A stretch of 64,000 bases of DNA, taken from the sequence record MT446416.1; one strand, written 5' to 3'. Made by a program: the position numbers and the translations under genes. Within the stretch, counting starts at the first letter, position 1. Each line of letters opens with the position of its first letter. The notes below the pieces were generated by a model that was not told the DNA's origin, searched no databases, and saw only the letters and a program-made list of their open reading frames with translations. Positions 17,725 to 22,962 of the stretch are shown here, one piece after another.

Positions 17725-18429
17725 TTACAAGCCATGTCTTTTCAAAAATCTAGCAAACACATTTTTGGAAGCACCATAGCTTTCATATATACTAACTTTT
17801 TTCTCACCATTAGTCAAACGTTTTTTTATATCTTCTATGTTATCTTCTAAACGTTTTACGTTTGCAAATTTCTTAGATGGTATGTTATTTTTGGTTCTAT
17901 AATTCAGTACTGAACCTGAACTGATATTCATTATTTTAGCAATTTCAGTATCTAACAAACCTTGGTTAATATATTCTTTTACCTTTTCATAATCAACTGA
18001 TGTTTCACCACCCTTTGTATTTGACGGAGGCTTGACCATTTTTTGTGAACACTCAACACTACAATATTTTGTATATGATTTCACTTTAGTATGTCTACGG
18101 GAAAATTCCGTATTACAACAAGCACATACAAATGAATCATATCGTGCTTGTACTCCATTCTTATGTGTTTTATAACGATGTTCATCAACATGAAGTATTT
18201 GTAAATTAGACAAATCATCATTTGTGAAATCATTATCAATGTGGTCTGCTTCTTCAGACTCAGTTAAATATCTACCTTCTTGTACTGCTAATAGATATCT
18301 GGCATATTGAGTACTGCTTCTATCAGTTGGAGAATTATAAAGTATTACAGTTCTTCTACCTTCAGGGTTTATCTGTATATACCCATTCTTCCAATCATTA
18401 CTATATGGATATTCTAATTTTATTTTCAT
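17725..18429 (-). CDS. free-standing HNH homing endonuclease
   Basis: YARYLLAV..GRYLTESEEADHIDNDFTNDDLSNLQIL; CACC..YCSVEC Zn finger; C-terminal HTH-like region. Confidence 0.85.
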   Translation of the reverse strand: MKIKLEYPYSNDWKNGYIQINPEGRRTVILYNSPTDRSSTQYARYLLAVQEGRYLTESEEADHIDNDFTNDDLSNLQILHVDEHRYKTHKNGVQARYDSFVCACCNTEFSRRHTKVKSYTKYCSVECSQKMVKPPSNTKGGETSVDYEKVKEYINQGLLDTEIAKIMNISSGSVLNYRTKNNIPSKKFANVKRLEDNIEDIKKRLTNGEKKVSIYESYGASKNVFARFLKRHGL

Positions 18430-18448: not shown

Positions 18449-18753
18449 TGAGCCATCTGTGAGTCGAACACAGTACCTAACGATTCGTATAATCTATAGT
18501 TTTCACTATAGTACGGACTATATCATCATCCCATAGGGATGCCGGACGCTAATGATGTATTACACAGTAAGATCGTACTGTACCATCTAGTCTCTGCACC
18601 TTCCCAATACGCTTATTGGGCTTGGCTCAGGATTGTCATCACCATTACGTGTTAAGATTTCCCTGAATTCATCCAGTTTTTCAATCACCATTACTGATGA
18701 AAGTCACCATTGTCGATGAGTCGTTTGCTCTAACCACCGTGAGCTAATGGCCC
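18449..18753 (-). tRNA. intron-containing tRNA(CAU), probably Ile2 (exons 18716-18753 and 18449-18485)
   Basis: Spliced GGGCCATTAGCTCACGGTGGTTAGAGCAAACGACTCAT|AATCGTTAGGTACTGTGTTCGACTCACAGATGGCTCA folds as a cloverleaf; CGACTCATAATCG arm resembles enterobacterial Ile2; elongator Met not excluded. Confidence 0.85.
18486..18715 (-). mobile_element. group I self-splicing intron, 230 nt, no internal ORF
   Basis: P GAAUUCAGGGAAA 18658-18670, Q AAUCCUGAGCC 18624-18634, R GCAGAGACUAGA 18586-18597, S GAUAUAGUCC 18515-18524; P7 GACUA/UAGUC; P1 with U.G at 5' splice site; P9 with GAAA loop; terminal G. Confidence 0.92.
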
Positions 18754-18782
18754 GATTTGGGTGTTCCTAGTGTTTCATTATT

Positions 18783-18996
<214 letters not shown>

Positions 18997-19008
18997 AAAT
19001 TAATTATA

Positions 19009-19401
<393 letters not shown>

Positions 19402-19417
19402 ATCACCAACTTTAATT

Positions 19418-19757
19418 AAAAAAATGGATGGTTACGCTTTTAAACGCCGCTGTTAATTCAGCTTTATAACCACCCGTTTTAACTTGCCTTTCGGCTACCT
19501 TGACGTGGGGGCGTACAGGCTACTAAAAGCAACTTCTGTAAACATATTTCCACACCTTACCCTTTTAAATAAAAGTCCATCCGGTTTTCCAGTTTGGTGA
19601 AGGACTGTCACCTCTAGTTTAAACCTGCTAGTCAAGTAATAATTGCCTATCGTCCAATTATCAAACCCGTCTAGGTTAACATTCACCACTTCCTAGAGTG
19701 CCAGAGATCTTGTTCTGGATTTCATCGACGTAACTTACACCATATACGTCTGATTGT
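19418..19757 (-). ncRNA. candidate structured ncRNA (~340 nt) with its own promoter
   Basis: Promoter 19765-19793 directly upstream; stems GACGTA/TACGTC, CCAGA/TCTGG, CTAGG/CCTAG, GGTGA/TCACC, GCC-GAAA-GGC; 3' stem GGGTGGTTA/TAACCATCC then U tract. Confidence 0.6.
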
Positions 19758-19764
19758 GGAATTC

Positions 19765-19789
19765 ATTATATCAGTACTGAACTATTTAG

Positions 19790-19794
<5 letters not shown>
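19765..19794 (-). promoter_or_regulatory. sigma-70-like promoter
   Basis: TTGACT-N17-TATAAT; 23 nt identical to 20184-20206. Confidence 0.7.
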
Positions 19795-20168
<374 letters not shown>

Positions 20169-20173
20169 TATAC

Positions 20174-20376
<203 letters not shown>

Positions 20377-20380
<4 letters not shown>

Positions 20381-20541
20381 ATTCGTACCAGTAGTTCAAT
20401 TAAGTACATTTCATATGCTGGATCGTTGATAAGTTTATCATACAGATGTGACTCTGAAATGAATTCCCAATGATATTTTCGCCATTTACCAAAACCTGCA
20501 TATCTAAAATTAATGTCATTCATCCATTCTTCATGTGTCAT
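20377..20541 (-). CDS. 54-aa MTHEEW microprotein 2
   Basis: MTHEEWMNDINFRYAGFGKWRKYHWEFISESHLYDKLINDPAYEMYLIELLVRI. Confidence 0.75.
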
Positions 20542-20702
20542 AATCGTACCATTATTTCAATAAAGAACCACGGATATACTTCATGGTTTATAAGTTTATC
20601 GTATTCTGCTGGGTCTGATATAATTTCCCAATGATATTTTCGCCAACTACCTATACCCGAATATCTAACATTAATGTCATCCATCCATTCTTCATGTGTC
20701 AT
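20538..20702 (-). CDS. 54-aa MTHEEW microprotein 1
   Basis: MTHEEWMDDINVRYSGIGSWRKYHWEIISDPAEYDKLINHEVYPWFFIEIMVRL; SD AAGG. Confidence 0.75.
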   Translation of the reverse strand: MTHEEWMDDINVRYSGIGSWRKYHWEIISDPAEYDKLINHEVYPWFFIEIMVRL

Positions 20703-20740: not shown

Positions 20741-21279
<539 letters not shown>

Positions 21280-21299
21280 ATCCTTAATATTATATTTTA

Positions 21300-21371
21300 T
21301 AAAGGGCCGGAGAATCGAACTCCGATTGGATTCTTAGAAGGAATCTGTTTTATCCATTAAACTAGCCCCTC
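21300..21371 (-). tRNA. trnR: tRNA-Arg(TCT)
   Basis: GATTC-CT-TCT-AA-GAATC, CGGAG-TTCGATT-CTCCG; acceptor with G.U pairs; no encoded CCA. Confidence 0.8.
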
Positions 21372-21381
21372 AGTACTAATA

Positions 21382-21987: not shown

Positions 21988-22962
21988 TTATTTAACGTGT
22001 TTCCATGATACACCTCTAATAGCTCTACTTATTTGCATTCTATGAACGCCAAACTTTTTTGCTAATGCGTCATAACCAAATTCTTTATGTTTTGGTACAA
22101 ATACTTTTCTACAGTATCTAACTATATCTTCAGTTAATTTGGAATTTGGTTGTTCATCACCTTTAAGATGATAATCAGGGTTATTTATTTCTTTATATTC
22201 TGTACTTTCTTTTGCAGTCGCCCACATAAGATTGTCTAAATCATTATGTTCTTTATTACCATCTTTATGTATTACGTATGGTTTGTTTTCGGGATTTGGT
22301 ATAAAAGCCATTGCCATTACACGACTTATTTTAAATCCTATATGTTTGAATTCATCACCAACTTTTATTTTTGTTGCATGATATGGATTTCCATTACTTA
22401 GAGTCTGCTTTAATATTTTTCCAGTGCGTTTGCTGAATAAATTTCCATTATCACTAATAGAAAAATCATCCTCAAATCCAATTACATCTTTAAATATTTC
22501 AGTTTCATTTTCTGGTGGTTCAAATGGTATTCGGTTTTTATAGTAATATGTATTTTTACAAGAAGTTCCGCAAAATCCTTTTGACCTACTATCAGAAATT
22601 ATTATTCTATTAGTACAGTTGATACATTTTGTTTCATATGGTACAAAGGGTTTATAATTTTCGTATTTTATATTACTTCTTTCTAACATATGAATTCTAG
22701 CATGTTCAGATGCTGACAATATTTCAAGATTTTCTGGGGAATTATTTAATATATTTTCATCTATATGATGTACATGTTCATCGGATGATAACCATCTACC
22801 TGCTGCAACTGCTGCAACATGTCTGTGATAATATACTCTCCCAGTTTTATGACACATGGGGTGTTCTTTATCCATAAAATAAAGATAACCCTTATTAGTG
22901 CCGTGTAATTTTAATTGGTTTATTATACATACCAAAGTTCTCCGTAAGTTGTTGTTTCGCAT
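21988..22962 (-). CDS. homing endonuclease with two HNH-type domains
   Basis: N-half YYHRHVAA..GRWLSSDEHVHHIDENILNNSPENLEIL; C-half NUMOD4-like IFKDVIGFED..SISDNG and AFIPNPENKPYVIHKDGNKEHNDLDNLMWAT; start codon uncertain. Confidence 0.85.
   Translation of the reverse strand: MRNNNLRRTLVCIINQLKLHGTNKGYLYFMDKEHPMCHKTGRVYYHRHVAAVAAGRWLSSDEHVHHIDENILNNSPENLEILSASEHARIHMLERSNIKYENYKPFVPYETKCINCTNRIIISDSRSKGFCGTSCKNTYYYKNRIPFEPPENETEIFKDVIGFEDDFSISDNGNLFSKRTGKILKQTLSNGNPYHATKIKVGDEFKHIGFKISRVMAMAFIPNPENKPYVIHKDGNKEHNDLDNLMWATAKESTEYKEINNPDYHLKGDEQPNSKLTEDIVRYCRKVFVPKHKEFGYDALAKKFGVHRMQISRAIRGVSWKHVK

Follow-up and report, generated by a model that had tools for sequence, protein, structure and literature searches.

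The flagged stretch of about 340 bases in this jumbo Escherichia coli phage contains two adjacent non-coding RNA modules rather than one RNA. The first, module A, is a predicted RNA of approximately 190 nt with three pseudoknots supported by comparison among relatives. It belongs to a family with no known function that we found in no database, and it lies among tRNA genes in at least seven groups of large phages. The second, module B, is an sRNA-like unit of approximately 145 nt that ends in a repeated terminator-like element. The flagged stretch is 100% identical to Escherichia virus TH47 and 97-98% identical to other Asteriusvirus jumbo phages such as 121Q, PBECO4 and SP27. Throughout, the window is the whole stretch of DNA that was analysed, 64,000 nucleotides from record MT446416.1.

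Two modules in a phage tRNA cluster

The region lies on the minus strand inside a tRNA cluster, in which ARAGORN calls tRNA-Thr, Asn, Ser and Arg, with tRNA-Ser (18907-18996) and tRNA-Arg (21299-21372) flanking the region and HNH/NUMOD4 homing-endonuclease genes interspersed. A sequence-only reading had described here a promoter, a series of small hairpins, a closing terminator-like stem and a single GTG-started ORF, and every one of these features was confirmed. The hairpins are GACGTA/TACGTC, CCAGA/TCTGG, CTAGG/CCTAG, GGTGA/TCACC and GCC-GAAA-GGC; the terminator-like stem is GGGTGGTTA/TAACCATCC, followed by seven U and ending at 19418; and the ORF is the only one of 30 aa or more on that strand. 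The features of the region, as defined by the present analysis, are as follows.

19765-19793, minus strand: sigma-70-type promoter, with -35 TTGACT at 19788-19793, a 17-nt spacer with TG, and -10 TATAAT at 19765-19770.
19574-19763, minus strand: module A, a structured RNA of ~190 nt, in which RNA position n corresponds to window coordinate 19764-n. PK1 pairs 19756-19759 with 19686-19689; H1 is 19724-19754, H2 19701-19718, H3 19671-19696 and H4 19638-19662 (loop GGACGAUA); the H-type pseudoknot S1/PK2 is 19614-19637; H6 is 19596-19612 and H7 19581-19592; PK3 pairs the H6 loop (19602-19606) with the 3' tail (19574-19578).
19565-19573, minus strand: U-rich tract (UUUUAUUUA) directly after the 3' strand of PK3, by inference only a possible weak terminator or RNase E site.
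19502-19560, minus strand: module B, long irregular hairpin, in which P1 pairs 19550-19556 with 19502-19508, P2 pairs 19536-19540 with 19514-19518, and P3 pairs 19529-19533 with 19519-19523.
19486-19495, minus strand: module B, GCC-GAAA-GGC GNRA hairpin.
19418-19475, minus strand: module B, terminator-like repeated element (T-element), with an outer stem pairing 19467-19475 with 19426-19434, the conserved internal loop UAAAGCUGAAUUAACAG at 19450-19466, a variable inner hairpin at 19435-19449 and a U7 tract at 19418-19424.
19495-19689, minus strand: 64-aa GTG ORF spanning the 3' part of module A and the 5' part of module B, not a gene.
19009-19401, minus strand: downstream 130-aa ORF of unknown function, without a Pfam hit, given for context.

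The promoter matches 11 of 12 consensus positions and has a TG extended -10, and it is conserved in 121Q and Sharanji. Promoter-like sites as such are not enriched in this AT-rich DNA (39 found, 40 expected). However, this particular type, TTGAC-N8-TCAGTACTG-N-TATAAT, occurs only twice in the 64 kb against 0.01 expected, and the other copy (19003-19031) is directly upstream of tRNA-Ser. Near-identical promoters precede RNA units in related phages. Folding of the single sequence is not convincing, with z-scores of -1.84 for the whole region, -1.18 for module A and -2.26 for module B, so that any claim of structure has to rest on comparison with relatives.

BLAST against 50,697 phage records revealed two patterns. 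T4-like Proteus phages such as PM2 match only query positions 68-254 (window 19577-19763) at about 92% identity, and Morganella and Shigella phages match essentially the same stretch. The Klebsiella phages RaK2 and K64-1 match from 19762 to 19408, but with a 42-nt insert after position ~19565 that is a complete promoter, TTGAAC-N17-TATAAT. When the two halves were searched separately, module A was found in 56 records of Asteriusvirus, Alcyoneusvirus, Bragavirus, Novosibvirus, a Stephanstirmvirinae phage and Aeromonas phages, whereas module B was found only in Asteriusvirus and Alcyoneusvirus, apart from a piece of about 54 nt (window 19508-19561) in Kuravirus podophages. A full promoter stands in front of module B in K64-1, RaK2 and two metagenome contigs, mgL013 and mgL012. 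In mgL012, module A lies behind a promoter that places +1 at AAUUCCACA, and is followed by another promoter and unrelated sequence, with module B further on behind its own promoter.

The interpretation offered by the sequence-only reading is therefore only partly supported. It proposed one stand-alone RNA of ~340 nt, of unknown class, running from the promoter at 19793 to the U tract at 19418. The region is indeed non-coding and structured, has a sigma-70-type promoter, lies in the tRNA cluster and matches no known RNA class. In favour of a single unit, no promoter separates A from B in TH47, 121Q and ELP-22, and the two are also neighbours in Alcyoneusvirus; in TH47, where module B has no promoter of its own, A and B may be one primary transcript. 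Nevertheless, we consider a single functional unit unlikely, since module A occurs without B in Bragavirus, Novosibvirus, KP13-16 and Aeromonas phages, part of B occurs without A in Kuravirus, B has its own promoter in the four genomes named above, and the long-range A-B pairing of the minimum-free-energy fold is impossible where B is absent. The suggested roles (protein sponge, RNA polymerase decoy or defence decoy) remain guesses, and nothing here speaks for RNA polymerase in particular.

Distribution and predicted fold of module A

Module A is 85-96% identical in Alcyoneusvirus, Bragavirus, Novosibvirus and Morganella phages, with more distant copies in the Stephanstirmvirinae phage and in Aeromonas T4-like phages, and homology stops at its borders. 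In every lineage it lies in the tRNA cluster, in the orientation of the tRNA genes, often starting 0-5 nt after the CCA of an upstream tRNA.

PM2: fills the gap between tRNA-Gly (ends 2500) and tRNA-Asp (starts 2699).
Shigella phage SdyM_006: between tRNA-Gly and tRNA-Asp.
Proteus phage 1 (T5-like): between tRNA-Leu and tRNA-Ser.
KP13-16 and metagenome contig mgL014: follows tRNA-Leu.
Aeromonas avDM6, ZPAH1, Asswx_1 and CC2: starts 0-5 nt after the CCA of tRNA-Pro.
Morganella Mm5: ends a few nt before tRNA-Glu.
Aeromonas phage 65: about 290 nt from the upstream tRNA, an exception.

A covariance model (R1), built from 11 close sequences with a hand-specified nested structure, recovered exactly one copy in each of 19 phage or metagenome loci, with scores of 62-238 bits, and no second copy in the window. 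A later search found the single copy in the RaK2 IMG/VR contig. The 3' half aligns almost without gaps, and on 18 distinct sequences a structure of 31 pairs gives 94.7% standard pairs, against 22-45% when partners are slid by 1-3 columns. Thirteen pairs show changes on both sides, and 0 of 500 shuffles reach the observed pairing, compensatory cells or covariation score. This half contains H4, whose loop carries the invariant GGACGAUA; S1 (NNUUG/CANNN), whose 5-nt loop pairs with a downstream CUAG (PK2) to form a classic H-type pseudoknot with an A-rich third loop; H6, which varies as GGUGA/UCACC, GGUAA/UUACC and GGUUA/UAACC; H7, a weak helix not kept in Ceceduovirus; and PK3. PK2 varies as CUAG/CUAG, CUGG/CCAG and CAAG/CUUG, and PK3 as GUCC/GGAC, ACCC/GGGU, AUCC/GGAU, GCCC/GGGC and UCCC/GGGA. 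A U-tract follows PK3 in all jumbo-phage copies, but not where a tRNA follows.

The 5' half had to be aligned by hand because helix lengths differ, and it is thus more exposed to selection bias than the half counted by program. In all 19 sequences the chosen pairs of PK1, H1, H2 and H3 are canonical, with compensatory changes, including at two PK1 positions (CCAC/GUGG, CCUC/GAGG and GCAC/GUGC). In total, covariation supports six local helices and three pseudoknots, of which PK1 (5' end with the H3 loop) and PK3 (H6 loop with the 3' tail) tie down the two ends. As only 19 distinct sequences in about eight lineages were available, many compensatory changes are inherited by whole clades. In TH47 the standard +1 of the promoter falls near 19757-19758, on or inside the 5' strand of PK1, so that the primary transcript may lack part of PK1 here; mgL012, with 4 more nt, does not have this problem. 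A 5'-3' closing helix (UCCA/UGGA), predicted by the minimum-free-energy fold and RNAalifold, was rejected because it is impossible in Aeromonas copies and competes with the better-supported PK1 and PK3.

The conservation could alternatively reflect a DNA-level element, such as a homing-endonuclease target, a recombination site or a replication signal, since the tRNA cluster is full of HNH homing-endonuclease genes and of insertions and deletions, and the module has clearly moved between unrelated phages. This is very unlikely, because compensatory changes maintain pairing and include conserved G-U pairs (for instance U-G in 17 of 18 sequences at S1) that would be A-C mismatches on the other strand, and because the orientation always matches the tRNA genes.

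No known RNA family was identified. Against the 4,227 models of Rfam 15 (including riboswitches, ribozymes, 6S, RNase P, Y RNA, ROOL, GOLLD and HEARO), the whole window at gathering thresholds gave only a group I intron and tRNAs elsewhere. Positions 19000-20200 at E up to 10 gave three chance-level hits (E 6-10), all between 19118 and 19372 and outside both modules, and five loci with divergent homologs (L006, L007, L008, L020 and L022) gave nothing on the module. ARAGORN made no tRNA or tmRNA call inside 19418-19794 or on the homologous stretches. The Kuravirus XT18 non-coding region shares GGACGAUA and AGAUGGA strings with module A, but the covariance model with filters off gave only noise there. 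Two further ideas were rejected. A CsrA sponge is not favoured, since by our own count there are about four GGA motifs per copy against about three expected from rough base composition, and the conserved GG(A/G) at the 3' end covaries with the H6 loop. A T-box-like UGGN pairing of the H1 loop with a tRNA NCCA end is not conserved in Aeromonas copies. Literature searches found no description of this RNA.

Module A was not found in the cellular genomes searched. There is no match in 5,426 complete E. coli genomes, and a first pattern scan of 185,579 species genomes found nothing. A second, looser pattern gave two hits, which fail the covariance model and lie in stretches where ARAGORN finds no tRNA genes. 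Altogether, five pattern scans of IMG/VR, one of metagenomes and two of species genomes returned only isolates already known, three metagenome contigs and these two chance hits; as these were exact-pattern scans, more distant relatives may have been missed.

Both modules are accessory. Phage Sharanji (Asteriusvirus, host E. coli K-12 MG1655) keeps the promoter and the first 36 nt of module A and then continues straight into the start region of the downstream ORF, so that about 330 nt, comprising the rest of A and all of B, are missing. Four other isolates show the same 35-nt remnant.

Module B, the T-element and the 64-aa frame

The long hairpin P1-P2-P3 of module B is 96.6% paired in seven sequences, with three compensatory pairs, against 27-44% in slid controls. 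The minimum-free-energy helix UUGCUUUU/AAAGGCAA was rejected, since it is broken in K64-1 and mgL012, whereas P1-P3 covary. The GNRA hairpin is conserved in all B copies and in the paralog of phage EJP2. The terminator-like stem of the sequence-only reading is one copy of a repeated element of fixed length, reading ACGG-stem-UAUAAAKCUGAAUURACAG-variable hairpin-stem-U-rich. Nine distinct copies of identical length pair 100% in the outer stem, with two compensatory pairs. Copies stand at the end of module B, after a tRNA in mgL013, between tRNA-Ser and tRNA-Arg in EJP2, and immediately upstream of module A in Klebsiella phages, where, as inferred from reading the sequence, its TTGACA and TATTAT could double as a promoter. 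The element behaves like an end-of-unit signal, probably a terminator, perhaps with an internal loop recognised by a protein or polymerase.

Alternatively, module B together with the T-element could be a cis-acting leader or attenuator controlling read-through into the downstream ORF (19009-19401). Module B always ends in the T-element just before an ORF start in the seven genome types seen, and in Sharanji the deletion fuses the promoter almost directly to that ORF. However, this reading is unlikely: the ORFs downstream of B in TH47 and K64-1 are not homologous, T-element copies also stand where no ORF follows (after tRNAs, between two tRNAs in EJP2 and before module A), and no riboswitch family matches. 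Module A, for its part, is usually followed by a tRNA, and no constant association with a homologous downstream gene was found.

Conservation of the 64-aa frame was also examined. The frame is open in TH47 and nearly so in 121Q and ELP-22, but it carries stops or frameshifts in 7 of 11 relatives compared. In-frame stops fall at codon 3 in PM2 and SdyM_006, 6 in mgL012, 10 in Aeromonas phage 65, 11 in Mm5, and 17 in K64-1 and RaK2, and in 121Q the C-terminus is frameshifted, although nucleotide identity is 85-96% in the enterobacterial phages among them. Substitutions follow base pairing rather than codons, the start is GTG, and no obvious Shine-Dalgarno sequence was seen upstream. It is thus very improbable that the ORF encodes a small protein and that the hairpins are incidental.

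Interpretation and related systems

With moderate confidence, we favour the view that the region encodes two separate non-coding RNA modules that would be transcribed in the same direction as the surrounding tRNA genes. The non-coding nature, module borders, covarying fold, tRNA-cluster context and dispensability are demonstrated by the comparisons above, whereas expression, processing, stability and action in trans are inferred from sequence alone. In most phages module A would be co-transcribed with tRNAs and freed by the tRNA-processing enzymes of the host, with cleavage and trimming after the CCA of the upstream tRNA making its 5' end and RNase P at the next tRNA making its 3' side. In Asteriusvirus it would start from its own early-type promoter and end at PK3 plus the U tract. 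We hold this route, and a high stability and nuclease resistance of an RNA with both ends buried in the fold, with moderate confidence. Only tentatively do we suggest that it acts in trans by binding a protein or RNA partner, most plausibly one connected with tRNA metabolism or with host defences that target tRNAs; as nothing identifies a partner, this step is a guess.

A catalytic role, for example as a self-processing element that helps to cut tRNA-cluster transcripts, would be consistent with the three pseudoknots, the many invariant unpaired nucleotides (GACGAUA, CGGG, AGAGGU, CCUU and GAUGG) and a 5' border that abuts tRNA 3' ends. It is nevertheless doubtful, since no ribozyme model in Rfam matches, the spacer after CCA varies (roughly 0-5 nt) and differs in sequence, and phages lacking the module still carry and presumably process the neighbouring tRNAs. 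A broader possibility, unlikely but not excluded, is that module A is a compact RNA-only machine working on or with the phage's own tRNAs, be it a new ribozyme, a tRNA- or ligand-binding RNA or a self-assembling particle. This would make it a small counterpart, in gamma-proteobacterial phages, of ROOL and GOLLD, and one or more of the covarying pseudoknots (PK1 or PK3) may then actually be an intermolecular contact.

Large phages carry tRNA islands whose role in countering host shut-off and tRNA-targeting defences is under active study, and the non-tRNA RNAs inside such islands have stayed unexplained for decades. Module A is small, heavily constrained and horizontally transferred between unrelated phage families; it occurs in cultivable E. 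coli, Klebsiella, Proteus and Aeromonas phages, and natural deletion variants already exist, which makes it an unusually tractable model for asking what these RNAs do. All 56 GenBank records that contain it leave it unannotated or overlay it with spurious hypothetical protein calls, which the covariance model would correct.

Among known systems, the T-element resembles canonical intrinsic terminators in having a G+C-containing stem (9 bp) followed directly by a U tract (U7) at the end of RNA units. It differs in that the stem encloses about 32 nt, made up of a 17-nt invariant asymmetric loop and a second hairpin, in that a scan for ordinary terminators does not list it, and in that it recurs as a conserved repeat at three places per Klebsiella phage genome. 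tmRNA also has tandem H-type pseudoknots and is matured by tRNA-processing enzymes, but module A has no tRNA-like domain, no tag reading frame and no ARAGORN or Rfam tmRNA hit. Pseudo-ToxI of phage PhiTE sets a precedent for a non-coding, pseudoknot-forming phage RNA acting as a counter-defence decoy (PMC3475682). ToxI-type RNAs, however, are short tandem repeats that mimic a host antitoxin, whereas module A is single-copy and non-repetitive and has no host counterpart in the E. coli genomes searched.

By setting, the closest analogues include the small stable RNAs rnaC (species 1) and rnaD (species 2) of phage T4, non-tRNA RNAs of 119-139 nt that, like module A, are encoded inside a phage tRNA cluster on the tRNA strand, and whose function is still unknown (PMC9697503). 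No homology to them was detected, as model R1 has no hit in the T4 tRNA region at E up to 1 and BLAST has no T4 hit; module A is also larger and has three pseudoknots. ROOL and GOLLD are likewise phage- and prophage-encoded, highly pseudoknotted RNAs of unknown function, "often near tRNA islands" (bioRxiv 10.1101/2024.12.08.627333), and module A shares with them the phage origin, the proximity to tRNA islands and the multiple pseudoknots. According to that preprint, many GOLLD RNAs exceed 800 nt and both RNAs form homo-oligomeric cages. ROOL is about 580 nt. Their Rfam models do not match here, and module A is 190 nt and is found in phages of Enterobacterales and Aeromonas.

Group I intron and homing endonuclease genes in the tRNA cluster

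On the minus strand of the window, the following features were identified among or beside the tRNA genes:

18449-18753, minus strand: tRNA with anticodon CAU, interrupted by a group I intron
17725-18429, minus strand: 234-aa ORF just downstream of the intron-containing tRNA
20216-20702, minus strand: three tandem, overlapping 54-aa ORFs
20741-21265 and 21988-22962, minus strand: free-standing HNH_3 plus NUMOD4 homing endonuclease genes

The group I intron (RF00028, 100.5 bits, Rfam hit at 18494-18807) interrupts the anticodon loop of the tRNA. The 5' exon is GGGCCAUUAGCUC...CUCAU, at about 18753-18716, and the 3' exon, ...UCGUUAGGUACUGUGUUCGACUCACAGAUGGCUCA, ends at about 18449. ARAGORN does not call this tRNA; in 121Q, ELP-22 and Sharanji the tRNA-Met(CAU) at the same place is called as an ordinary tRNA of 75-90 nt. 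The 234-aa ORF has, by eye, an HNH-like motif (DHIDND...NLQILHVDEH) but no Pfam hit at E up to 0.01, and it may be the endonuclease associated with the intron. The three 54-aa ORFs all start with MTHEEWM and appear to be paralogs; they have no Pfam hit, and the same triplet is annotated in 121Q and Sharanji.

The free-standing homing endonuclease genes lie between tRNA genes, and the cluster is a hotspot for insertions and deletions. For instance, 121Q carries a 69-nt promoter duplication, and ELP-22 carries a ~380-nt insert with tRNA-Gly upstream of module A. In phage Sharanji (locus L029, positions 1501-1560), a natural ~330-nt deletion removes most of module A and all of module B, leaving the RNA promoter about 50 nt upstream of the downstream ORF.

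Module B hairpin and terminator-like element in other phages

A copy of the module B hairpin was found in Escherichia phage vB-EcoP-XT18, a Kuravirus (locus L022), within a ~790-nt gap without annotated genes (positions 714-1502). Further on there is what looks like a tRNA-like 3' end, composed of a T-arm GUAGG-UCCGAAC-CCUAC, an acceptor strand and ACCA; neither ARAGORN nor Rfam calls anything there.

The terminator-like element, with its invariant 17-nt internal loop UAUAAAKCUGAAUURACAG, is a dispersed repeat of these jumbo phages, and BLAST finds three places per Klebsiella phage genome. Copies were located as follows:

L023 (phage EJP2), 993-1105: terminator-like element
L013 (metagenome contig), 1772-1830: terminator-like element
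L004 and L024 (K64-1 and RaK2), upstream of module A: terminator-like element

In the Klebsiella phages, the copy before module A reads TTGACA-N17-TATTAT and may double as a promoter.
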